NCBI RefSeq assembly: GCF_032062105.1
Contig: NW_026937907.1
Span: 1 to 64,000, forward strand
Reading direction: 5' to 3'
Length of the DNA: 64,000 nt
Origin: Saccostrea cucullata
Taxonomy: Eukaryota
Both the position numbers and the translations under genes were made by a program. The number at the start of each line of letters is the position of its first letter. The first letter of the stretch is position 1. The notes below the pieces were generated by a model. The model ran no database searches and was not told where the DNA came from. It worked only from the letters and a program-made list of their open reading frames with translations. Below are positions 437 through 19,300 of this stretch, piece after piece.

Positions 437-961
437 ATTATTACCATTCAGTATTTGCATTTGATACTGATATAGTGTAGGGAAGTGTTTTCCTAGAAAT
501 CTGAGGTAAGCATTATTACCATTCAGTACTTGCATTTGATACTGATATAGTGTAGGGAAGTGTTTTCCTAGAAATCTGAGGTAAGCATTATTACCATTCA
601 GTACTTGCATTTGATACTGATATAGTGTAGGGAAGTGTTTTCCTAGAAATCTAAGGTAAGCATTATTACCATTCAGTACTTGCATTTGATACTGATATAG
701 TGTAGGGAAGTGTTTTCCTAGAAATCTAAGGTAAGCATTATTACCATTCAGTACTTGTTTTTGATACTGATATAGTGTAGGGAAGTGTTTTCCTAGAAAT
801 CTAAGGTAAGCATTATTACCATTCAGTACTTGTATTTGATACTGATATAGTGTAGGGAAGTGTTTTCCTAGAAATCTAAGGTAAGGATTATTACCATTCA
901 GTACTTGTATTTGATACTGATATAGTGTAGGGAAGTGTTTTCCTAGAAATCTGAGATAAGC
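437..961 (-). repeat. 7 x 75-bp tandem array of the LETMD1 exon 3' end plus its splice donor
   Basis: Near-identical units translate as AYLRFLGKHFPTLYQYQ(I/K/M)QVLNGNN; each contains AATG|GTAATA. Confidence 0.95.
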
Positions 962-2207
962 ATCCTTTCCTCTGGCTGCAGTATTCTTTATTCTATCCAC
1001 TAAGGAACTTGATCTTCTGATGCCAAATTGACACAATTCATTGTGATCACTTTGCTGATATGGTGCTAGATAGGTGCTGCATACAAAAGAAAAAAAATGT
1101 GTTGAATATTTTCACTTTTTGATCAAGAAGCATCCTAGAGAAAATACATTATGGAAACTGAAAAAAAAAAAATCAAAATTTAAAGTGCTGAAAAATATGA
1201 TTGGGTAAGGCTGATTTTGATGGGTCGATCGAAGTACGTCATACAAATCATTTTTTATTGTTGGCCTGGTATAATTATCAACTCAAGAAATCAAGTCTAC
1301 TATAACTTTCAAAGAGTTATCATAGAGAAAACAAATAGAAATGGAATATAAAGCTGTAACTGTACACCACCTTGTGAAGAAGTACGTCATACAAATCATT
1401 TTTTATTGTTGGCCTGGTATAATTATCAACTCAAGAAATCAAGTCTACTATAACTTTCAAAGAGTTATCATAGAGAAAACAAATAGAAATGGAATATAAA
1501 GCTGTAACTGTACACCACCTTGTGAATTATGAGGCATGGATCATAATGTTATGTGAATTAATACCAATCAATTTTAGTACTGCAGATCAGACCAATTTTA
1601 GTTACTATTGATTATCAAATCAAAACAGTATTACAGAACCATACAATCTAATATATTTGATCAATAATTTGAACTTAAATTTAAAAGTTAAATCAAATTA
1701 AAGCTATATCAATGAAACAAAATATATAAATTGCATTAGAATGGGAATAACTATCTTGTAATTTGGTATTTGCCACCGTTAATGCTGATTTCATGGTCGC
1801 AAACAACCGTTTTACCAGCTCTGTTTAAGTGTCCCCAGTAAAAATCAGTTTGCAACCATTAAATCAGCATGAGCAGTCTGAAATACGAAATTACAAGATA
1901 GATTTTACCTAATTTATCCTGGAGAAGGAAAGTAATTTTTCAATACAAATCTCTAAGACCAACTTTAATTAATTATACTTAGTAAGGAAGTTTGATATAA
2001 TATCTAAATAAAGTTATTGTGCATAGCTTAACTTGCTTGATCTGTTAATTAAGGCTATAGAGCTTGAGCTCATTATATTGCAAAATCAAACCCCTGTCAG
2101 CCTGTCTGCCCGACACTTTCACTTTCCAAGCAAAACCCACTGAAACCCTACCTTGATGAGTGAAAAGAAAACAGTAGTGGTCTTGACATCAAACGTCGGG
2201 ACAGCAT
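895..2207 (-). CDS. LETMD1: LETM1 domain-containing protein 1, first two coding exons (2207-2152, 1076-895); gene continues beyond the window start
   Basis: Spliced translation MLSRRLMSRPLLFSFHSSSTYLAPYQ...GKDAYLRFLGKHFPTLYQYQIQVLNG. It has an Arg/Ser-rich mitochondrial-type presequence and a segment resembling the LETMD1 motif YHRFLGRHFPRFY as I recall it. GT-AG sites keep frame. Probable 5' UTR exon donor near 2505. Confidence 0.75.
1231..1526. repeat. 2 x 148-bp tandem duplication in a LETMD1 intron
   Basis: gaagtacgtcatacaaatc...caccttgtgaa starts at 1231 and again at 1379. Part of the unit resembles 35330-35400, so it is probably a dispersed-repeat fragment. Confidence 0.9.
1749..1904. 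repeat. Small foldback/MITE-like inverted repeat
   Basis: Arms tatcttgtaattt...atgctgattt and aaatcagcat...aaattacaagata are imperfect reverse complements. Confidence 0.55.
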
Positions 2208-2711
2208 AACTAGAATTTGTAAAATCCTAATAAAAACTACATTTGTAAATACATATTTTCGTATTCTCACTCCTATTCTTCTTTGATAAAACTGTAAATA
2301 TTATGAACTTATGAGATCATGATCATCATGCACATGTCATTTCAAAATATTTCGTTTCCCGAACCCGATTGACATGATGAATTTCTAATATTTTTTTAAC
2401 CAAGCAAGAACTAAGATTTTAGAAGTATATTTGATTCAAACATAAGTACTCCTTAATTTTTTTAAATAATTTTTTTAAAATAGTATTTACAATTAATTTT
2501 CATACCTCTTTCTGTAGATCTTGAGCCGTTTTCTTTCTCACTTTTACATTGCTGTCATTTATTTCCGATGTATACAAAGTGTTGTTTCACTTTCAATAAA
2601 ATTAGTTACAACAACTACAAGTGCTTAAAAGGAAACAAAGCAAGCTTGTCATGTAACGTGCTAGAGTTACTAAGAAATTTCAAACCATATTCTACGGAAT
2701 CAGGACATCAA

Positions 2712-5700
2712 ATGGAGAGGAAAATTAAGACAGTTCTTGTAGATTTGAGTGGAACAATTCATATTGAAAATGAAGAGATTGCGGGATCTTTGGATGCATT
2801 GAAAAGGCAAGATCTGATGAATCATAATGGTAATCAAGTTTTATTCACAAAATTCTTTTTATAATGGGTAAACTCTATCAAACCAGTCCCCAGATGTGAG
2901 ATTCAAAAGATGCTTGTTGCACTAGGATGGTTGGATCCACTCAAGAGATTAGGGTAGTCCTCACATGTTACTATCTAATTGTTGAATGATGCATCTAAGG
3001 TAATCTAAGATTCAGCTGGCTCTACCCCCTGCTTTTTTATATATGTGCAGGAGAGTCGTCATTCCTTTACCTGAGTTCTTGCATCTCACAAGCTAGGTCC
3101 AAATAAAATAAAGTTGTAAAATTCCGATTTCGGATTATGACCTAAATTTTTCAAAAACTTGCTTCAGATGCTGGATATGACCTAAATTTTCCAGATAAGT
3201 GACAATGGTAAAGTTTATTGACTATAACTCTGTTTTGATGTAACTTGCATGAATGCATCTAGGGAAGGGCACTACCAGACTGGCTTGGGATGCTGGAAGT
3301 GACCTACATTTTCTGGATGAGTGAGCAGGTGTAAAAGAGACAATTTGTTCCTCTGCTGGGGATTGAACCCGGGGCCTCTGGCTTGCCAGTCCAGTGCTCT
3401 ACCAATTGAGCTAAAGGGTTAACCCACTAGCCCAAGCTAGTAGGATGCCATTTATCTTATACTACTACATTGTCCCCCTCCAGAGAATGAGATGTCCTCA
3501 TCTCTTTTGGAGTGCCGACACCTGTCGGGCGAAGTTCTAGTGGCAATTACTCTCACCCGCCAGAGAACACCCGGGTCCCAACGTGGGTGCCAAATGTAAC
3601 AGAGACAATTTTGTGCCGCTGCTGGGGATTGAACCTGGGGCCTCTGGCTTGCCACTCCACTGCTCTATCAATTGAGCTAAAGGGTTAACCCACTAGCCCA
3701 AGCTAGTAGGATGACATCTATCTTACACTACTACACAGGTTTAAGTTTTTTTTTAAAGCAGGTCTGTTCCCAAGTGACTTTAAGTCCTACCTTAACCAAA
3801 CTTAATATGTCAGAATGTACGCTAAGTACATGTACAAAAAAAAATGGTGTGAGATTTGCCTTAATTACATGTATAGATAACATTTGTGGAGGTGATCGAG
3901 CTTCATAATCTTTTTATTACAATATGTTTTTAATTTGAACAGGTTGAGGAAGTCGAATTTAAACATCAAATTTGTAACAAACACCACAAAAGAATCACAG
4001 AAACTACTATTACAGAGGTTGAGAAGAATTGGCTTCAGTATTGAATCCTCAGAAATCTTCACCTCCTTAACTGCTGCAGTTAAATTAATAAAGAGAAAAT
4101 CATTACGGCCATTCCTGCTTGTAGATGACAGAGCTTTAGAGGATTTTGAAGGTAAGTAAAGTATAACTGCATTTGTTGAATAATATACTTGAGGGGCTTA
4201 GACAGATTTGAAAATAATATTTTTTCAAAGTATCTGTATTATTGTTATATCATGACTTATATGTTGCTTTAGCTAATACATGTAATTCACATGAAAATAT
4301 AACAAAAAACTTGTTTTATCTGGAAATTATTGAAACTACAATTGATATTGTTTGATTGATATATCCTTGCACTGTTTGAAGCAGTCTAATGAGCATTGAT
4401 CAAAAATATGCCACACTCATCACTGCAAGGACTAATTCATGTAAAAAAAAAATTGAATGCTTACTTAATGGTTTTCTTTATTGATTCGTCATGTGATTGT
4501 CATGTGAATGCACTTTAATTTGCAAATAAAAGTTAATTTGTATGAGTTTATTTCACATTTATTTACTATATAGTTATTACACATAAATTAATATTTTTTA
4601 CAGAGAATGACTTTTAATATATATGTCATTTGCTTTGTAGGAATTGACACCAAGTCTCCAAATGCAGTTGTGGTAGGACTAGCTCCTGAAAAATTTGAGT
4701 ATGGCAAACTCAATCAAGCTTTTCGGTTTGTATGAGATCATACTACTTATTCCCTATAGCATTGATATTAATTTTCAAAATTGATATGCAAGTTTTTATG
4801 GTAGTGTAATAAATGGAGAAATACAAAGCAATAAAGTTTGTAAAATACCTTTATAAAGTTACGTACAGCATCACAAATTGATATACATATTCAGACAGTA
4901 TCATCTTTGTGAAGTAACTATTTTGTCATAAACAGTACAATAGTATTTCATCCAAGTTTATAAGCTACATTTTGTACTATATAGCTGATATAACTTATGT
5001 TCTGAGAGGGCATGTAAGGAGCACTGGATGAGTTCTTTGACACATGAACTTTTTTTAAGGTTATTGATAGATGGAGCTGCACTTATAGCCATTCACAAAG
5101 CCAGATATTATAAGACAGCTGCTGGATTATCCCTGGGACCAGGTATAAGTCATGTAAGAGGGAGAATTCAATCTTAATTCTCATTCACTTTTAAAATAAA
5201 GTGAGGAGAACCTTGGAAATCAAACCTTTTTTTTATTTGGCAAGAAATACATGCACAGGAATGTGAAGGAAAAGCTTCTCATAAGAGCAGCAGCAACAAA
5301 TAATATAAACAAAACATAATTATGATTTTGAACTTTTGAGACAAGGGCCAGGTTTTTCAGAGTTTTTTCTCTATTTTCAATAGGGCCATTTGTAACTGGA
5401 TTAGAATATGCAGCCGATTGTAAAGCAGAAGTTGTTGGAAAACCTGAGAGAACTTTTTTCTTGTCTGCAGTAGAAGAATTTAATTGTCTTCCAGAGGAAT
5501 GTGTTATGATTGGAGATGTACAGTTTCTTATTTATTTAGAAAATCTTGCATCAATATTTTGACATATAAAATAGTGAACTTTTAAGTCATTACATAGAGC
5601 TCATTTTGAGATATGTGTGCCATGTTTGTAGGATGTTAGAGATGATATAAATGGTGCACAGAACTGTGGAATGCTGGGTATCCTTGTACAGACAGGTATA

Positions 5701-5896
5701 ATATATCAGTACTATTCAAGTTAAATAGATTATGGAGATGGATTTACACAATTTTTATTGTGTTAACATTTTATATCATTTTCCCCCAGGTAAATACAGG
5801 CCTGAAGATGAAGAAAAAATAAATCCCAAACCATACCTGACTGTTAAAGACTTTCCTGAAGCTGTTGATAAAATTTTATCTCAAAAATATTCATAA
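2712..5896 (+). CDS. HDHD2: Haloacid dehalogenase-like hydrolase domain-containing protein 2; exons 2712-2806, 3943-4151, 4641-4725, 5060-5142, 5384-5517, 5632-5695, 5790-5896
   Basis: Motifs [53 protein letters not shown] and VQTGKYR join in frame across consistent splice sites. Confidence 0.95.
3330..3735 (-). mobile_element. Non-autonomous miniature LTR retrotransposon (TRIM) with tRNA-derived LTRs, Helenus-like
   Basis: Direct repeats 3330-3469 and 3595-3735 with TGTA...TACA ends. On the minus strand a PBS-like TGGCACCCACGTTGGGAC follows the 5' LTR and a PPT GGAGGGGGACAA precedes the 3' LTR. 4-bp TSD CAGG at 3326-3329 and 3736-3739. Pol III A box TAGCTCAATTGG and B box GGTTCAATCCC lie inside the LTRs. 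Confidence 0.9.
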
Positions 5897-6271
5897 ATTA
5901 GAAGTAAGATAATTTAACAAAGAAAATATTGCAAGACTCACCAGTAGATTTATCATTCTGTGTTATTCCATGCATATGTTGCATTAAATAACATGACTGC
6001 ATTTGAATTGAAAAGATTTGAAGACAATGTTCAACTGAACTCTTACTCATACTACACTGTACATCATACCATTTATGTTGCAAGTTAGTATAAAGTTTTG
6101 TTGTGAACACTGATACATCTCCATTCTCTCTTGAATAAAATTTTTAAAATTTCAGTATGTCTTAATATTCTTTTACATGGCTTGTAGATGTATTGTGTGC
6201 CACATACATTTGCCCAGTCAAGTGCATGATTACACATGTTAAATTTACGTCTTGCTAAATTTCCATTTTTA

Positions 6272-6495
6272 CAGTATAAGCGGAAATTTTAGCAAGACGC
6301 ATATTCAACAATTTGTCCTGAAATATTGCAGTCTTATTTTAGTGAGATATGATTTAGCGATTTGGAAATGCCCACTAAAGAAGCAAATTATAAATAATAC
6401 AGAATCAATTTTTAGCGATGTACAATTTTAGCAATTACAATATCCTTACTAATAATGCCAAAATTAAATCCTTGCTAAAAATTCTGCTTATACGG
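6272..6495. mobile_element. Tc1/mariner-type MITE
   Basis: TA-flanked imperfect TIRs CAGTATAAGCGGAAATTTTAGCAAG / CTTGCTAAAAATTCTGCTTATACGG. Confidence 0.7.
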
Positions 6496-7320
6496 TATTT
6501 ATCCCCAAAACAAACCTTCATGTTATGCAAGAGCTCTTCTACATGCAGTAATTTGTTGATAGCCTGGACATAAAAATAAATTTCATACTTGACCTTGTCC
6601 AACTAACCCTGACAAAGAGTCCAGCCTTCACAGGCAACTGTACACAATAAGCAATTCTTTTTCTCCACAAAATTGTAATAGTTCAACTCATGTAATTTAA
6701 GGATTTCAACATTATTGCTACATTGCAAAACATTTCAATTCATTTCCCATACTTTTTACCAAAACTTTGGATGCTCATTACTGCTACTCATTTATCAGTA
6801 AGACAACTCATTATCACTTCATAACAATTAAATCCTCCAGCACGCAATGTCACCCTTCCTGTATAATACACTTGACTCACCATGTTATATGAACACAACT
6901 CGACTCACAAAGTAATCATTACTTTAATATATAAAATAAATATTGCACTTGTTACAAAATACAAATATAATCTTTACACTCATGTATAAATGACCCTACC
7001 GCATTTTCTCATTTAAGGTGGAATGAACACAGAAGCCAGGGGCCACATTGCTCACCTTAATTCCACTGGTCTATCTGCTCACAAGGAAAAAAAATTTGAA
7101 AGATTTTCCCCCTCTATGTTCCATTATAAATGTTTAATCCCATACTGTGACCCCCCTGGGTCATGATCTGGAAGAACCTGAGTTTTGGAGAGGTCAAAAC
7201 TTAAAATTTGTTCAAGAAAGCTTGTTTATGCTTTAGTGCAGTTTTAATTGGCAAAATTAAAAAGTTCTGTAAATGAGTTGTTTTGGCCATTTTGAACAAT
7301 AAAGGAATCCATTAACTTCA

Positions 7321-10300
7321 CTAAAACCTGGTCAGCTTGATAGGGAAGTTTTCAGTCACCAAATGATTGTCTTGAAACACAATAACTATGTTGATTTCAA
7401 AGTCTGAAAAGAAACATAAAATCAGGTTTAGGTACAACAATTAACTAAGATTAAAATAATATCACATTCAATTCATTTCACCTGCAAATACATACTGCTG
7501 TATTATATACTAACCAACTTTGAAATTATTGGTTGAAAGTGTTGGGCAGGTGAAAAGTCGAGGGAAAATCATCCATATAGGGATTGAGATACCACGGCAG
7601 ACATCTCCATCAGCTATCTGGATATTCTGGATCTCTGTGGCTGTGTATAAAGATTTCTCAGTTCTGTATTTTTTAATGAAGCATATACTGCGTGACAGAG
7701 GAAGGGACTACAATATGGAGTCCAATTTTAACATGGGAATTTTTAAATAAAAAGTCTTTGAAGAATCTCCTTCTTTAATACAACAGGACCCAGATGATTC
7801 AGGTATAAAGCATTGAGGACTGTTCTTATAATGATCATTTATATACATGTATATGATAGACATCAAATATTTGAGTTTTTGTAAGAAAATATACCATCTT
7901 TGGCATAACCCTCAGCACATCCACAAGTTTCTACTCGTACCAGCTGAATTTCTATTGATTTGATTTGTGTGTCACAATGTTCTACTGTTAGCTGCAAATA
8001 AAAAATCAATCTATATTTCAAAACCGATATTCATATAATTTTCTTATTTCTAAAAAGTTAAAATATGGAACATAACCACTGACTAATCAGGTTGACATTA
8101 GAATATGTTGATTTACACTACCTGAACAACTACAGACACAACGTGCATGAATTTTTTCATTATTCAGGATTTTGTCAATGCTGTTATCAACCAACACTAG
8201 TAATTCTTAGCAGAAACATAAACAACCTTTTTGTTAAATATTCCTTGTTACTTTGTAGCCAACAGGACAACAAAATTCAGGACAACAGCATTCAAAATCA
8301 TAGAAGCTATGTAGTCTGCACAGGGGACATTTTCCCCTTAATTTAAGAAAATTAGACATTAATTAAATTTGTTCCTTAATTTTATTATTACTGAAATAGT
8401 TGTATTCAAAATTTGATGATGAACTGTTATGTGTAGCTGAGAGTTTACATGATAAGAAGGTCAACACTTGAATATTAAATGCTTAAGAATTAGTGTCCAG
8501 CCTTGGACATACATTACCTATGAGTGGCTGAGTGGCTGACCTTGAACTTACTTTCCTCTAGTGATGATTTTAGACTTACCTCTTTTCTGGGTGTCTGACT
8601 GATGTCCTTAGATTTAACTCTCCTCTAAGTGGCTTTGTGTTCACCTTAGACTTACTGGTACTTCTCTTCTGGGTGGCTCAGTGGTGACCTAGGACTTATA
8701 TTATCTTAACTAAGTTGCTAAGTTATAACCTTGGACTTACCTTTCCTTTTAGTGGCTTAGTGATGACCTTGAACTTACCTCTCCTCTGAGTGGTTTAGTG
8801 ATGACCTTGGACTTACCTCTCCTCTGAATGGCTTAGTGATGACCTTGAACTTACCCCTCCTTTCAGTGGGTAATTGATGAACTTGGACTTACCTCTCCTC
8901 TTAGAGATAACCTTGAACTTACCCCTCCTTTCAGTGGGTAATTGATGAACTTGGACTTACCTCTCTTCTTAGTGGCTTAGTAAATGACCTTGAACTTACC
9001 TCTCCTCTTAATGGCTTAGTGATGCACATCACAGCTGAGTCTAACTTTCCTTTGACCTTGAACTTTGGCACATTCTGTTTCTAGAGTTCAGAGTAGAAGT
9101 TTGTAAGAAGGGATCTGTTATAATTTTTTCACAAAAATTTAATCTTAAAATTAATACATACATTCATTTCATTTTCTACATTTTCAAATTTAAAATTCAA
9201 CTCCTACAGATTTTACAGTGCTAGTGACTGTAAAGAAAATGTATTGTTATCAGATAAATCCATAAGAGATAATTAACAAAAAAACTAGCACATGCCAGCA
9301 ACCTTACTTCTTTAACATTTGTCAGGGTCTCAGGTGAGATTGTAAACTGTACAGGTTTTGGTGTAGACTTGGCTTTATCCTGCTCTTCCTGTTCATCAAT
9401 ATAAAACTGTATTGGTGCAATATAATGTAAGGAAAAAATTTACTTATTTAACATACAGTTAATACATGGCAATCAAACAAGGTTTAAAGGGTAATGGAAA
9501 TGGGTAGCAATTCTTTTATATGTTTTAGAGTTTGGCGAAATAAAACCAACAAAAAAAACCGCATCGAAATCGATGCAAGTTTAACGGAGTTATTGCCCGT
9601 TGAAAGCGTCTATTTTTACCTGTTATGAAAATCCAATCAAGCAAAAATAGAATCGATCGAAAACGAGGCTATATCGCCGTGACGTCACTACATGGACAGA
9701 TTAGGCGGATTAGTATGGATTACAACGAGATTAGTTCCGACAACAACGACGATATCAGCCTTGATATGTCAGATGGATCTTCAGTTTTTGATGAACCAGA
9801 TGGATTGGGTGTCGAACTTGGTACAAGACCTTACCAGTTTGAGCCAGAAGCCGATTCTGACGAGGAATTGGTAGATGAAAACAACACACAGCCCAGCGAG
9901 GACGAGCGCTTGGGGAGTACTGACTGGTTAGAAAATGGCATTTTTTCCAATTAGATTGCTTAATGTGACATATGTAGTCCAATATTTAGACTTAATAACC
10001 ATATAAAGCAACATAAATTGCGTAATTTACTTAGGGTATGGCTGAACTATGAACATTTTCTGCGGAAAGGTGATTGCCTTCAAGGCATCGTACTTTTACC
10101 TTCTTGTTTGATTACTGGCAAATCTTTTACCAAAAAATCACATTCACTATAGGATCATGATAACCCTCCTATAAAATATGTTGGCTAAATTTTAGCTAAA
10201 TGTTTCGTTATTATTTTTAGGCTTTTTAATATTGGACCTATGTATAATATTGTTTGAATACACTGTGCCTATACTGTGGTTTCCTTAGTTACATTACAAA

Positions 10301-13300
10301 ACCAGTATCAACCATATTTTTATGCCGTTTTGAAAATAGCATGAAGTAACTAGAAATATTCTGCATTTAGTTTCTAACAAATACAATTTTTGGTTTATGA
10401 GTTGGTTGCTTGGGAACGAAATTTCAGTACAGAAAACTGCACTCCACAGTAAATGGGGCTTGGGGAGGGAGATGTACTTGTGTTATGACTTATTCATCAT
10501 CTGAAAACAGTAATATCACAGATTTTTTCTATTAAACTTTTAATTCCTATACTGAATTAAAAATAGCTTTAATTTGTCAACAGGTGCACTTGTGAGCAGT
10601 GTGTTGCGATGCCTAATGCAGAAGAGTGTGTATGCTGCCAGGAGATACCTGAAATCAGATGCGTGACAGAAGAAGACCATCGACACTGCATTACACAGCA
10701 CAATGGGTTCTCCCCAGTATGTCTTCACCCTTCTGTTTTGAGGACGGCGTACCATGCATATAGACAGCAGTATGCAGAACTTCCGGAAACTAATGGGTAA
10801 TAATTCTGATTCAATTCAATGAAACAAATGTTAAAATGAAATCAGAATCAGTTTATTTCGCTCAAACCATACAATATGGTACATGAGGAACATAAACTAT
10901 AAACTTTAAATGAAACATAAATAAGACTAATTGGCTGTTCATTGTTTATTGAACATAGAAACTCACTTTAGAACAAATTGCACAGTGAACTTATCAAATT
11001 GTTTGATAATCCACAATGTCTCAAATTTATACAAACAGAAAATAAAACCAAAAATATTACAAACTCAACAAAATGAAAACATTAACACAACAATAGGAAA
11101 AAAAGGTCAAACTTGAACATTTCTCCCACCTCAATTCATTGCTGCCTTCTGGTGTGGAAGTGGGGACCCAGTACAGGTGGTTAACAATGCTCTTGATCCA
11201 CTCCATCAACCTCTCACAGTCTTTTTCCTTGCCGAGGGCTGTCAGCTTCTTCTTCAGACCTTAAATGTACATAGAAGTTTACAAAATCTGACAATTATGT
11301 ACATAGAAGTTTACAAAATCTGACAATTATGTACATAGAAGTTTACAAAATCTGACACTTGTCCTTCCTTTTTGAGACAATTTTAATACAAACGATAGAG
11401 TTTTATAATAAATTAGCGTCTTCCTTTACTTTATAAAATTTTAGCATTCAACTTTATTGTAAAAACAAGAAAGCAATGTCACAAACCTTTTGCAACATGC
11501 CAAACATCCACATAGTGTGTAGTGTCTGGCATATTCTCCCGAACCCATTTCGCCACCTGGAGATGTCGGTCTGTTATGAGCTGGCAGACTTCAATGTTGT
11601 TCTGTTGTAGGAATTGGACAACTCTTATCAGCCCTTCCTTCTCCATACGACAGCTTCCCCCGACCTCATTGCTCTAATAAGTAAAAAAAGTTACATTAGT
11701 TTACCTTAAAAGGTCAAATACTATTGAACATGATTTTTTTTTTTATAATTTTTTTTTTAAACTTATCACTTAGATAAGAATTATTGCATTTCTGTAAACA
11801 GTTATTTTTAGAATAAGTTGTTTCATGTATCATATGGTAAATACCTGTACAAGTTGGACATCAATGACGATGTTTTTGTCCAAATCCATGGCCGTGTAGC
11901 TGCCAAACTTGGCACAGTGACCTGGAGTGTCGGCCCTCCCATCTCCGCCCAAACGAACTGGCTGACCAGAGTCCTGAATCTGCTGTACATACTGGTTCTG
12001 GTGGTTCTTCCAAACACTAAGAATGGTGGGATGTAAGTAATGCTGTTGGTGATTCATGAAGGTCCTCACTGAGATTGTAGCAATGTCCATAAATTGCAAC
12101 ATCCGAATGGACTTTGTCGGCAAGGACCCAGAAAACAAAATGGCACATGACAGTTCAAAATTCCCAGCTGGGATGGCACCAATAAGGGGCTGGCTTGACC
12201 AAATTCTGCTGAAACGACAGCATCCACACTCTTGACGAACAGAAATGAAGGTTCCCTTTGAGTGAACGATGTCTGCCAAGGATGGGCTGGCACATCTTGG
12301 GCATGTCGCAAAGAGATCCATGAGTTGACTATGGTACACTATAAACTTCATTCCTCTCCTATCCCTGAAAATGCAGAGAGGTCAAAATTATGCTGTCACA
12401 AAAGTACTCTCAATCATGACTACTACATTACATATAAATAAATGAAAATGGGACTTAAATTATAACTTTGTGAAATATAAGTGGATTTGTTCTCATTTTT
12501 TTTTTTTCAGTACATCATGTCATCAAGTTATTGATTATTACTTGAAATAATATCTATAATATAATTACCCTCTGTCGGCTTCCAGCAAATCTTCTGAGTC
12601 AATGCTACTGAATGAGTCGTGAACTGATTCGTCCTCCTCATCTGAACCGTCATCCGTACCAATAGAGGAACGTTGTGTCAGCACACTCTTCATGTAGTAC
12701 AGGTGTCTCTGGTTCTCCAAGTCGTCTTAGGGGAGGAGCTGGCAGAAGTTCACAGGCAATTCCAACATCCCTGGTCTTCACAGGATTACCTGCCTGCACC
12801 ACTGAAAATAATAATTTCAATATGCACATTATTGTTTTAAAACACATTGTAGCCTACATTAAAGCATAAAAAATAAGTTGGGTTTTTTGAAACTACAAAT
12901 TCTTTAAAAAAAAAACAACAGGTGGAACTGAAATGAACTTAGCTGATTCAATTCTCACAATACTGTTTAACTTTAGCTTTACTCGACAAATATTCCTTAA
13001 ATATTAATCTTTATTCATTCAACATCGAGTCCCCTTGCACGAAAACTTGTGATCAACATTTTATCACCCAGTTCAGCTGGATAATGTTGTACTGATATTT
13101 ATAAATTAAAATACCTTTGTCGCTGGTCTTCCATTTGGTTTGGGTGTAGTGGGACTTTCTCATTGGCTTAGTCAAGGAGCGTTGGCACCCTACAGTCCTT
13201 GTCTCTTTTGCAACCATCTCTACGACAATGGTACATCTCTGTAAATATCAGACATAAAATTTTAATATACATAATGACCATCACAGCATGAAGAATATGC

Positions 13301-16300
13301 AGGAAACATTAAATTTTTTCAAAACATTTCTTTTTTTTCCCCATATGATTTTTTTTTCTTTTCTGTCAAATAAATACTTCTGACTGGGAACTATTTGTGG
13401 CTCATAATTAACAAATCTGCCCAAAATCTAGGTATGTAATATAGGACCAATGATAAGTATCCTTTAACCCATTTCCTACTGCAGCCAAGTCTGCAGAGCT
13501 TATCAGTAAGACGAGGGATAACATGCCTGCTGCTGTGATGGCTAAGTTAATTAGCACCATCTGTACTTTCTGCCTGATAACAAGATAATTAATCCCTGTA
13601 GGTATATAAAAGTATACATATTTATAAAGCTCTTAAAATTCTGCATCCAGCAGTATAAATTTCAATATGCAGCAAGAATGCTATCCCATGTTTTATCTGA
13701 TGTAAATAATAATAAATTCTTAAAAGCACTTGAAAATTTTTGTCATCTTTTTATTCAACTGCATTTTATGTGCATAAAGTGAATGTAAGCAGTATGTTTT
13801 TTTTGCATCAGTAGTTACATCAAACATTTCTGAACAATTTACAGTTTATTTCATTAAAAAATCTATAAAAATAAAAAAGTTATTGATATTTCAATACATA
13901 GGGTATTATCTCAGAATTTTCGACATTTGAATCAAGAATGGAATTTCTTTAAAAATTATTTAAAAAATATACAACATGCATTTTGCTACATTTTAAACAA
14001 AGTTTTAAGTAAAATAATGTATTACAAACATTATATCAAAACAAAAATGAAAAAAAAAATTTACTTACTTCAAAATAATATGTAATAAAATATTGCAAAA
14101 AGAAATCCTCAATTTTAATTCTCAACTCAAAAAAAGAAGTCACATTCACTAATGTTTACACTTTCATCATTCGCATGATGTGCTTAGAGCTGCACTCTAA
14201 GTGTACCGGGACATCACATTGTTGGCATCCAAATTTCGTAACACCTTTCCTTTGTCCTTGTGGTCCTGACAGGGAACATTCCCGGCACACTTTGTTTTTG
14301 GGGAACATTTTCACAATGTTATGCTCGGTAGCGCGTCCTCCACAGTCAAGTTTTTGTGGTTCTCTTCTAGATCTCACATCACCTATTAGATCTTCCACTA
14401 GGTCTTCTATATAGTCTTGAAAACTTGGCCATCTCTCACGAGCAATTTCTGGGTGGGTGTCCTTCACTACTATGTAGGAATTGTGAGCCGATGCCATCAT
14501 CAGATAGAAAAACAGCCTCCGCCACCACTTCTTTGATCTGTGACTCAAGAGATAGTACCCTATCATCTGATCACATAAATCCACCCCCTTCATGTGTTTC
14601 TGGTAGTCCGAGAGAAGTTTTGGAACCTGCACCACGGTGTTCTCGGCAGCACGTCGTGTCACTTGTCCTCGATGGCTAGGGTCATGAAAGTTTGACAAGA
14701 CACTTACGGGTTTCGTGTCCAACCAAATGCAGTACGTCAGGTTGTCTTTTTGAGCTACTTTGAACTCATGCTTCCTCAAGTTGACTTTAGATGGGATTAG
14801 ATCCTTTGGAAGTCCCTTACGGTTTGCACGCACAGTCCCACATGCCATGATCCCTCGGAGGTAAAGGTCATTCAGTAGGTCGGTGCCCGTGTAGAAATTA
14901 TCCATATATACATTCAAGTTTGATCCAAAGTAATTTCTGCACAAGTCCATCACCACTCTGTATGACAGTCCCTTTTCCTGATTTCCCTCCTTACCCGTAT
15001 ACACCTGGAACTTGCTCAAATAACCAGTGTCGCTTTCCGCCATTGCCCAAACTTTCAGTCCCCATTTTATAGGCTTAGCAGGTAGGTACTGGCGAAAGGA
15101 TAATCTTCCTTTGAACTTTATCATTGATTCATCAATGGTTACATTTCCATGTGGAATGTAAATTTCACCAAATTTCCTGTCCAAGAATTCCAAGAACCAT
15201 CGAACTTTCCAAAGTTTGTCTGGAATCTGTGGTTGTTCATCATTGTTTTGGATATGTAAATACCTCCATATTTGATGGAATCTATCCCTTGACATGATTC
15301 TGTTGAATGATGTGCAGAATAACCATTTATTCTGTCGCCAATAATCTGTTTTTTCTGGGAGACGCAGTATTCCCATTGCAAAACACAGTCCGAGAAATGC
15401 CCTCATTTCATTTGATTCCACTGGAGTCCATTTTGCTGCATACGGTGGGGGAGGGTTTTTTTCACGTTCCTGGCGAGCATAAATGTTCGTTTCATTTACT
15501 AATTTGTCAATGAGTTCATTTGTCCAAAATAGTTCAAAATATTGACCTGCCGATGCCTCTTCAGGGTGTTCTACAGTGGCCCCACCAACGTTTTTGTACC
15601 GATTCTGCATCCGGGGTTGGAAATTTTCCTTCACCCACTGATGCTGAAAGCCGAGAAATTCTTCATCTTCGTCACTATCCTCGGCGAAAATATTCAAAAT
15701 CCAGTCATCAACGTCTCCCTGGTTAACTTCACGATCAATATTTCCAGCTAAAACATCCATATCCTCTTCATCTACATCGTATTCTGCCTCAATATCGCTA
15801 CCATCGCTCAAATCTTCACCTCGCTCCGCCATTTTGAAATTTCGTTCGTGTCTAAAGCATCAGTTTTCTTTGTTTCAACCAGGTTTTCCCCTCATAAATA
15901 AGTATCTAGTTTCACTTTTATGTGCGCATGATCAAGGTCTATTTCCGCTTTTCCTTAGTCTGTAAAATGTTTTAAACATCCGGGCTTTTCAATGGCATTT
16001 AAAGACCAAGTATGACGCAGGTACGTAAACTACTACTGTAGTGGTAGTTCGCGATGTGAGCGGAATACGACTACAGACGTAGATCGCGGGGAATGGGTTA
16101 ATTCTCCTAAAAGCTTCATAAAATTAAATTCGATTTGCTGTCAGCTTCACAACAATGAAAATATTTTAAGCAAATAAGGTTGTGTACAAATTTTACCTCT
16201 TCATCTAATTCAATGGTTGGTGTGTTAATGGATCTCTGCTGCTCTGGTGTATTGTCAGACCCCGGCTGCTTTGGTATATCGTCAGATCTCTGCTGCTCTG

Positions 16301-19300
16301 GTGCATCACCCGACCCCTGCTGCCATGTATCGTCAGACCTCTGCTGCTCTGTCTGTGTGCCTTCAACCCCCTGGGGATTACATCTGTCACGGCCAGCTTC
16401 AGTTAGGGTGTCGGACTTGGACTCTCTCCTTGCCTGCTCAAACTCTAATACTATCTACAATTCAATTTTAAAACCGATATTCACAAATCCTTTAAAATAA
16501 ATGTTTTGGTCATAAATTTACTTTAAAAAAAAAGGAGTGATAAACTGCTAAAATAATATTGTTCATAGGTGATATTATAATGAAGCAAGCAATGCATCCC
16601 TTTATTTCAATGAAAAGGGTCAGACATGGGGCTGAGGTTTATGAACAGAATCTTTGAGGACCTTACAACAAATTTTAATTTCAAAGCGGCATTTTTGTCA
16701 ATTGAAGTGGTCAATTTGGCGCTTTCTAGGGAAGCAAGCATTCCGTAGTGTGCAATTACCATCGCCTGACACCCGAGACTACCAAATTTAGAGGTCAAGC
16801 TATCAAAAATCTATACTCTGTGTTAGCCCATTAGGCTATTAAATCTAAAAGAAAAGTAAACATATATTTACCTCCACCGAATTGAAGTTCGAATGAACTT
16901 TTTTGTAAAATCATAATCTTTAATTCGTTTAACCTATGCATTGTGTGTTGCTATCGCAAGTCGTCTCAGTTACAATGATATTCAATATAAATAGGGGGAA
17001 GTACCTGACAATTACAAAGCGCAAACGGTTAGCCATTATTTGTTTCATATATTTCAACTTAAGTAGTTTTTTAACCTTTATGTTATACTTATACATGTAC
17101 ATGGATTGTTTTTGGTAGGTAATGGGATAGTGACTGGCAAGTGGCAACCTAAGGCTAGTAACTTTGTTACTTCCACTACCCCGACGGGCTAGTATCTTAT
17201 ATTTGTAATTGCGCACCCCTGAAGTATGTGTTTATCTGGTTAAACAAATACATCAGATGCATAGAATTTTGAATGTACACATAATTTGACTGTGCTATTT
17301 GATATTGTGATGCCTGACAGGACCTTGATTTGGAAATAAAGAGTCTATCATCATGTACAAAATAGCTGCACAAGTATTGAGATGATGAAGATTACCATGA
17401 TTACAGCACTTATATTTATATGTAAATAAAAATATTTTAATAATAGATAAATAAATGATTGAATTAACTTACTCTTTTGGATTCCCTCCTGAGATAAGCC
17501 CTCCTAGGCTTCTTCGGGGTGCTAGTAAGAGGAGTCGTAGGATGGGCTTTCCGTTTCCCAAGTGCCAATGCCGGTGTGGTGCAAGGGTCCACTTTCGTCT
17601 GCAGTGTAGGAATGGCATCCTTATTGAGGTCCTTTCTGGATACTGTCACTCCCATCGACTCCATAATCTTGTACTTGGCAGGGTACGCATCCTCAGTGAA
17701 GTGAACGGAGCACAACGTGGACGTCTTCGAGGGACCCTTCCAATCTCGTCTGTACTGTTGCACAAACTGTATCCATCTTCGCAAAACGGCAGGTCTGTCA
17801 AAGGGAAAGTAGTGTAGGCTAATTCCCTCTATCTTTGTGTTGCTGCAGCCGCCCGCGACACATCGTCTTCCTCTGGAATCTGCTCTGGGGACGGGGGTCT
17901 CCGACATCCTCAGTTCACACGAAAATTTCACAAAAATCCAATGGAAAAAATTCTAAAAACTAATTTTAAACAAACTACACACTACATACTACGATCGCTG
18001 TACAACAAAAGTTCACAAAAGTCACTAGAAATATAAATAAAGCTCTAAAAACGTCCTCGAAAATTCACTCTCTCCTTTGTTTTCAAAATGGTCGGTCCAT
18101 GTAGTGACGTCACACTAGTGCATTGTGGGTGCCAAGGACCAAAACCGCGCGATTCACAAAGTCGCTCAGGTGTGAATTTGGGTTTTCCCCAAATAACTCC
18201 GTTAAACTTGCATCGATTTCGATGCAGTTTTTTTTGTTGGTTTTATTTCGCTGAGTTCTAAAACATATAACAGAATTGCTACCCATTTCCATTACCCTTT
18301 AATGATGCACTTAGTATAAAGATTTCATCTAAACAAAACCTGACATTGAACAACCATATACATATGTACAATTCCAAACTATGGTCAACCTAATTTCTGG
18401 TCACAATTTTCTTCCTTTATGTGATGCATCAATGGACATTTATGAATCAAGGTTTTATTCTCCATGACATATAACTTCAACATAATTTTGACTATTTACA
18501 GCAAATAAATATCAAAATATGTCCATAAATTGTAACAATCTTGTTCCAGTTGTGATACTTCCTCCCCCTAAGATTTATCAAATGTAAAGGTTTTATGGTG
18601 TTAAAAAAGACAGACAGTTTGACAAACTGGACACAGGAGTAGAAATGGAGAGGAACTATGGCAGGCCCATTGAAAGACTAGCGCATAAAAGTACTGAAGT
18701 GGCAACATTAAATTCAAGGCAGTAAAGTCACTCATTTTTAACAGATGAAGTGATAGGATTTTCAATGATTTAACAATGCTGGTAGAAATACCCAGATGAA
18801 TTGACTGTATATTTAATACGTATATGGCCTGTTACAGTATTGTGAGGACTACTTCTATACCAACCTTTATGTTTTACAGTATTGCGAGGACTACTTCTAT
18901 ACCAACCTTTTTGATTTTCTCAGAGTATTCAACAATAAATTCGCAGGTTTTCTGTAAATCTTTGGCAAGAAGTGGTCTTTTCATCTCTGCTTTTAATGAA
19001 TACTGAAATTTTGAAACAACATCAATTATTTTTCATAATATTGTCCCTAAGTTAGTAATAGTGATAATTGATGAACAGAACTTTAGTTTTCTAGCTAATA
19101 ATCATATACATGTAACTGATAGTAAAACTGGTGACGTGGATATATATATGCAATGCTGCAAAATACTGTAGAAACATCTTTGATCGTTGGGACCAATGAT
19201 TCTGGATTTTGTGGGTTACCATTATCCAGGAATTTACATCCCCACTGAACAATTTTTTTCTATATATCTTTCCATTACATCTTCTAAATATACAGTTACC

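Follow-up and report, generated by a model that had tools for sequence, protein, structure and literature searches.

Minisatellites Straddling 5' Splice Junctions in the LETMD1 and VPS26C Genes of the Oyster Saccostrea cucullata

Introduction

Minisatellites whose first monomer lies across an exon-intron boundary have been described in the human genes F7, IFI6 (6-16), CBS, LMNB2, and PDGFA (Borensztajn et al. 2006, PMC1557585). Splicing of F7 selects the donor lying furthest upstream, and the identical pseudo-sites that follow it are silent unless they match the consensus perfectly (PMC1557585). Similar arrays in amphioxus, termed “mirages,” occur at both 5' and 3' boundaries and leave splicing undisturbed, although the mechanism behind them is unexplained (PMC3087553, PMC3902484). 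Here, we describe three tandem arrays of unrelated sequence that straddle 5' splice sites of the oyster Saccostrea cucullata, one at LETMD1 exon 2 and two at VPS26C exons 6 and 4, within the first 64 kb of contig C20044 (NW_026937907.1; hereafter, the window).

The window, with a GC content of ~33%, belongs to an assembly of 1.17 Gb in 23,869 contigs. Repeats within it were called with Tandem Repeats Finder (TRF), and exons were searched singly; a joined or spliced gene model was neither built nor searched. The host genes of these arrays lie on the minus strand, and a whole-assembly search showed each array to be single-copy. An earlier note on this DNA had described the three donor-straddling arrays and called their donors authentic. 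The arrays are present, and the authenticity of the donors is supported by homology, reading frame, and GT/AG. The same note knew of no named system of this kind, a statement overtaken by the amphioxus and human precedents above. The architecture is already known, and, judged by their structure, the oyster arrays would belong to the class of boundary-spanning minisatellites.

Three Arrays at 5' Splice Sites

The arrays and the exons concerned, all on the minus strand, are as follows (in donor sequences, a slash marks the junction).

437-963, minus strand: 75-bp array in LETMD1, 7.0 copies, 98% matches (TRF)
895-1076, minus strand: LETMD1 exon 2, 182 nt (alignment to Saccostrea echinata LETMD1-like)
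8713-9024, minus strand: 38-bp array at VPS26C exon 6, 8.4 copies, also called at 76 bp (TRF)
8512-9024, minus strand: the same 38-bp array as extended, ~13 units, with a 68/76-bp higher order in part (from the sequence and its pseudo-donors)
9000-9080, minus strand: VPS26C exon 6, 81 nt, phase 0-0, donor GAG/GTAAGT with its GT at 8999-8998 (PDB match)
7895-7991, minus strand: VPS26C exon 7 (Pfam Vps26, E = 4.6e-4)
18832-18918, minus strand: 42-bp repeat at VPS26C exon 4, 2.0 copies (TRF)
18907-19002, minus strand: VPS26C exon 4, 96 nt, donor AAG/GTTGGT with its GT at 18906 (PDB VPS26C residues 115-143, E = 3.3e-7)

Each array begins within a conserved exon and re-copies the end of that exon, together with its GT donor, into the following intron. 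The units run head to tail and are of minisatellite size (75 bp x 7; 38 bp x 8.4, or ~13 counting the degenerate ones; 42 bp x 2), and, on the basis of homology and reading frame, the exon-proximal unit holds the real exon-intron boundary.

Pfam Vps26 matches were obtained on four exons of VPS26C, and a search of exon 6 against all PDB sequences returned a sole match, to residues 173-196 of human VPS26C, with the alignment ending exactly at the donor. Exon 7 carries on the conserved sequence (LTVEHC..IEIQLVRVE), and its acceptor (7992) lies ~520 nt past the last array copy, in unrelated sequence. To keep the conserved VPS26C reading frame, the first exon 6 donor is needed. The 38-nt unit is laid out as nt 57-81 of exon 6, followed by GT and AAGTTCAAGGT. 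The 13-mer AAGTTCAAGGTCA occurs at nt 16-28 of exon 6 and at four sites in the array, and is absent elsewhere in the 64 kb; the unit therefore comprises exon 6 nt 16-26 plus nt 57-81 plus GT, and is wholly exon-derived. The GTAAGT donor arises where ...GAGAGGT joins AAGTTCAAGG. An initial duplication of ~67 nt, followed by internal deletion and amplification, would produce such a unit.

Nine or more strong pseudo-donors follow the true site (8999), among them those at +39, +77, +107, +145, +183, +221, +259, +420, and +448, with eight GTAAGT sites falling within 260 nt and one constituting a perfect AAG/GTAAGT. Their complementarity to the U1 sequence extends over seven to nine of nine positions. 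The +39 site alone is both in frame and open, and would supply 13 extra residues; the others run into stops. The copies from +183 to +259 are closest to the true junction (89-95% identity), while those beyond +300 have decayed, and the copies degenerate below ~8700, reaching ~8512. Recursive splice sites (ratchet points) were also considered for these positions and rejected, as the sequence upstream of the GT is purine-rich (AAGAGGAGAG/GTAAGT) and has no pyrimidine tract.

In LETMD1, the 75-nt unit consists of the terminal 67 nt of exon 2 (AYLRFLGKHFPTLYQYQ.QVLNG) plus GTAATAAT. The donor ATG/GTAATA, which is a weak one, recurs seven times in 75-nt steps, with the GT starting at 894, 819, 744, 669, 594, 519, and 444. 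Exon 2 is 91% identical to residues 23-78 of S. echinata LETMD1-like isoform X2; this identification came from a word search, and a Pfam search with the exon gave no match. The S. echinata ortholog has one 25-residue unit, in which ...QMQVLNG is followed directly by VLDLKRDA. The remainder of the oyster gene lies beyond the contig start. The exon-proximal copies encode QIQ, while the distal copies encode QMQ, the state of the Saccostrea ortholog, so the most ancestral-looking copies are not those closest to the exon. LETMD1 intron 1 also contains a perfect duplication of 148 bp x 2 (1231-1526; 100% identity) that is set apart from any junction.

The third array lies at VPS26C exon 4. Its 42-bp unit begins with the last 4-6 nt of the exon and continues with GTTGGTATAG..., such that a second AAG/GTTGGT stands 42 nt downstream of the first. 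This second site lies behind an in-frame TAA, with the frame ending at 18877.

Comparison with Known Systems and Probable Origin

The human counterparts are the 37-bp variable number of tandem repeats in intervening sequence 7 (IVS7) of F7 and the boundary minisatellites of CBS (IVS13), IFI6, LMNB2, and PDGFA, where, as in the oyster, the donor is repeated within the intron (4-25 times). The units are of similar length (37 bp in F7 versus 38, 42, and 75 bp in the oyster), whereas the number of exonic nucleotides per unit differs: four in F7, 25 in the exon 6 array, and 67 in the LETMD1 array. The pseudo-sites of F7 are weak (UGG/gugggu), unlike those of VPS26C, which are almost perfect matches to the consensus. 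Because perfect-consensus sites can compete, according to the F7 study, leakage to downstream sites would be likelier in VPS26C than in F7.

Amphioxus mirages share with the oyster arrays tandem units across exon-intron boundaries of both 5' and 3' type, unit lengths of 10-160 bp, and the occurrence of several arrays per gene (PMC3087553, PMC3902484); both also come from highly polymorphic genomes of marine invertebrates, of which such arrays are possibly a general trait. Mirages differ in belonging to another phylum, and in that splicing, length polymorphism, and somatic instability have been shown in amphioxus, whereas the oyster arrays are known from sequence alone.

Taken together, it is quite likely that the oyster arrays are minisatellites of the F7 and mirage type that arose by junction-spanning duplication and persist as silent by-products, with a probable excess at splice junctions. 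A short tandem duplication would first span the 5' splice junction and then grow by slippage or unequal exchange; the exon end and its GT donor would be repeated in the intron precisely because the duplication spanned the junction. Precedents and frame analysis suggest that such an event would be harmless, since normal mRNA would still be made from the exon-proximal site, and that the copies could then expand and decay like those of ordinary minisatellites. The exon-proximal donor would accordingly be the one in use, and the downstream copies would be silent pseudo-sites or would yield minor isoforms, most of them frame-shifted or stop-ended. The arrays would thus be tolerated by-products rather than devices. 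Since the pseudo-sites of VPS26C are near-perfect, some leakage in this gene is plausible, either to isoforms bound for nonsense-mediated decay or to the +39 isoform.

The arrays represent natural tests of how the spliceosome chooses among identical 5' splice sites, and the near-perfect pseudo-sites of VPS26C correspond to the one condition under which the F7 study allows a downstream site to compete. They are also likely to be length-polymorphic markers within housekeeping genes.

Are Junction Arrays Over-Represented?

Within the 21 kb that holds the host genes, six arrays and ~15 host-gene donors give an expectation of 0.30 donor-straddling arrays and P(>=3) = 0.002, a value that is post hoc and refers to one window among very many. 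No genome-scale count was found in the papers searched; a proxy count was attempted for this genome alongside a small random sample.

The sample comprised 127.6 kb from contigs picked by round numbers before inspection, and TRF found ~15 arrays in it with a period of <=200 bp. Two of these, one at an acceptor and one at a donor, lie across junctions of the same KIND-domain gene in L011, a randomly drawn 10-kb piece (from G000:C5000).

2404-3321 (G000:C5000): L011 acceptor array, ~20 copies of TTTTACAG/GC, running into the KIND exon at 3283-3497
8227-8717: L011 donor array, at the following exon of the KIND-domain gene (8075-8266)
5052-5534 (G000:C6000), minus strand: L012 array, 10 x 48 bp, 97% matches, beside the last OTUB1 exon
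11265-11357 of the window, minus strand: perfect 32-bp repeat, 2.9 copies (TRF)

The L011 acceptor array presents 19 pseudo-acceptors. Its three nearest units are 109 bp long and include 45 nt of the KIND exon (84-87% identical); the more distant ones measure 35 bp and carry just the acceptor. Each unit of the donor array consists of the last ~42 nt of the exon, TGG/GTAGGT, and ~30 nt of intron, with at least four copies showing growing decay.

The last two arrays in the list only abut an acceptor. The L012 array stops 13 nt short of the acceptor that opens the final OTUB1 exon (Pfam Peptidase_C65, 1.4e-28), and each of its units has an acceptor-like TTCATTCTGTTCAG; its descent from the OTUB1 junction is not significant (363 of 2000 shuffles), and it was counted as abutting. 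The 32-bp array in the window had been noted earlier as abutting an acceptor, and does so, its end being separated by 5 nt from the downstream AG of a putative exon; that exon belongs to a transposon gene nested in VPS26C intron 4. Its unit shows no significant similarity to the adjoining exon (1776 of 2000 shuffles reach the score), and for want of demonstrable descent it, too, was counted as abutting rather than straddling. A Pfam search with that exon gave no match.

For the proxy, the whole assembly was searched for 8-mers repeated at gaps of 15-45 nt, and runs were counted as two-copy matches minus three-copy matches; raw pattern-match totals were discarded, since they are governed by a handful of long arrays (the controls ranged from 25 to 1459 matches). 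The strong-donor words AGGTAAGT and AGGTGAGT occurred in 371 and 240 tandem runs, respectively, compared with 71-215 for eight composition-matched controls, so that the donor words hold the top two of ten ranks (rank p = 1/45). By exact count, the donor words occur 44,897 and 19,769 times in the genome and the reversed words 53,570 and 19,214 times. With chance pairs subtracted, the excess over the reversed words is 5.6-fold and 2.0-fold at periods of 23-53 and 5.4-fold at periods of 54-84. Array families, counted by hand and extrapolated, number ~52-60 for the donor words versus 5-24 for the controls and ~40 for the control AAGTAGGT, a difference that is suggestive. The acceptor-like word TTTTCAGG, at 10 families, was not in excess, although this assay is insensitive, real acceptors being a small share of the word's occurrences.

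Several points weigh against an excess at junctions. In the random sample, two straddling arrays versus 0.59 expected (P = 0.12) is suggestive only, and both verified arrays belong to one gene. The dinucleotide-preserving control AAGTAGGT approaches the donor words, with 215 runs and ~22 families in 54% of contigs; the proxy counts words irrespective of real exons at the array flanks; and dispersed, probably transposon-borne satellite families add to the donor-word counts.

Chance and ascertainment are the most serious rival to a bias, in that a window with three donor arrays is to be expected among very many windows even when junctions are not favored. Minisatellites are very common in this genome (7-8 per 64 kb) and the present stretch is gene-dense, such that ~0.25 junction-straddling arrays would be expected by chance in a 64-kb window and 0.3-0.6 in this one. 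In addition, the unbiased sample is not significant by itself, the control words spread widely (71-215 runs; 5 to ~40 families), and arrays beside recognizable exons are easier to notice. This explanation has to contend, however, with the low local probability for donors, with the donor words ranking as the top two of ten at 2-5.6 times their reversals on exact baselines, and with a randomly chosen piece, L011, that bears junction arrays on two exons of one gene. We regard chance as rather unlikely to be the full account and lean towards the view that junction arrays are over-represented across this genome, at acceptors as well as donors. The earlier note had proposed a bias that amplifies donor-containing units; the likely excess of junction arrays upholds that suggestion in part, but its restriction to donors is contradicted by the acceptor array of L011.

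Over-representation, if real, would point to a mutational bias linked to junctions. It is tempting, if speculative, to suggest that in broadcast-spawning invertebrates of extreme heterozygosity, oysters and amphioxus among them, splice junctions act as mutational hotspots where short tandem duplications arise. Where a conserved exon meets an intron of high divergence, repair synthesis might stall and re-invade out of register; alternatively, transcription- or splicing-coupled breaks might be responsible. Were this so, mirages would constitute a genome-wide class of elements feeding intron growth, new splice sites, and new exons. A real junction excess would likewise imply a DNA-level process tied to exon edges, unexplained since mirages were described in 2002, and would open its study to a second and distant lineage, the oyster.

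The word searches also brought several repeat families to light. A dispersed 47-bp satellite family, its unit starting with AGGTAAGTCAAGATTTTGGTGACAATG, was found at C4451:5217-19381 and on C202, C1272, C3535, and C9258; this family, probably carried by transposons, accounts for much of the raw total of AGGTAAGT array matches. A 38-bp array at C21:9154-9584 has units alternating between AGGTAAGT and AGGTGAGT (GAGG/AGGTRAGTAACGTCTGTATAAACCGCCCGACCCA). The word AGGGTTAA was tried as a control and rejected as a poor one, being dominated by telomere-like repeats; through it, TTAGGG-derived higher-order repeats were seen on many short contigs (C43, C1430, C4226, C4615, and others).

Alternative Explanations for the Arrays

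One point against regarding all three arrays as silent by-products is that the LETMD1 array keeps the reading frame and lacks stop codons (open frame 371-1111), making the sequence by itself compatible with a translated 25-residue repeat. Under this alternative, a downstream donor would be used and the protein would contain up to seven 25-residue repeats; the unit of 75 nt equals 25 codons, the frame is open across all seven copies, and the seven donors are identical. The S. echinata ortholog argues otherwise, however, since it passes from its one unit to VLDLKRDA at once. Moreover, the copies differ from one another by A/P, I/K/M, and V/I with no sign of purifying selection, and the F7 rule favors the first site. 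A coding role for the array is thus unlikely, although gene predictors could be misled into annotating it as a protein repeat of 7 x 25 residues.

The repeated donors might instead have a selected function, a possibility raised in the earlier note, serving as U1 decoys, as switches for regulated unproductive splicing, or as sites of junction sliding. The strength of the VPS26C pseudo-donors, as seen in the density of GTAAGT sites and the perfect AAG/GTAAGT among them, and the 13 in-frame residues that the +39 site would add, speak for such a function. In F7, however, the pseudo-sites are functional but silent, and amphioxus mirages leave splicing as it was. The oyster arrays are young and unrelated in sequence; the single unit in the LETMD1 protein of the related oyster is consistent with recent expansion; arrays at acceptors, which a U1 model does not explain, also occur; and distal copies are free to decay. 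Selection for function is therefore very improbable.

It is equally hard to view the arrays as traces of intron birth. In the Rogers model, an intron is born when an exon segment containing AGGT is duplicated in tandem; the arrays would be the remains of that event. The model is experimentally supported by work on ATP2A1 (PMC3265369) and has also been proposed for mirages. As in the oyster, it places exon-derived intron sequence beside the parent exon and a donor at the duplication joint, and the exon 6 array, with its unit of exon sequence plus GT and its GTAAGT formed at the ...GAGAGGT / AAGTTCAAGG joint, fits on the donor side. Under the model, however, the duplicated AGGT supplies both splice sites of a new intron, whereas the oyster acceptors are unrelated to the arrays, that of intron 6 (7992) lying well beyond the repeats. 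The end of exon 6 is also a boundary between conserved blocks in the protein, and the LETMD1 and exon 4 units hold genuine, non-exonic intron sequence. The introns probably pre-date the arrays, and an origin of these introns by such duplication is very doubtful.

Finally, mis-assembly near the contig end, suggested by the position of the LETMD1 array 437 bp from the contig start, can be dismissed as highly improbable, given that copies differ at specific positions, that the VPS26C arrays lie deep inside the contig, and that each array occurs once in the assembly.

Other Features of the Window

The two minus-strand genes are separated by a HAD-family hydrolase gene on the plus strand (2484-5893; Pfam Hydrolase_6 3.6e-12, Hydrolase_like 2e-6), on none of whose junctions an array is present. 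VPS26C intron 4 (9484-18302) is enlarged by nested transposon genes. It contains a P2X7-C-like cysteine motif (10573-10797), for which a Pfam search gave no match; an intact piggyBac transposase open reading frame (ORF) of 558 aa (14156-15832; Pfam DDE_Tnp_1_7 2.6e-94), for which a contig search for the encoding sequence gave no match; and a THAP-like ORF at 17467-17952.

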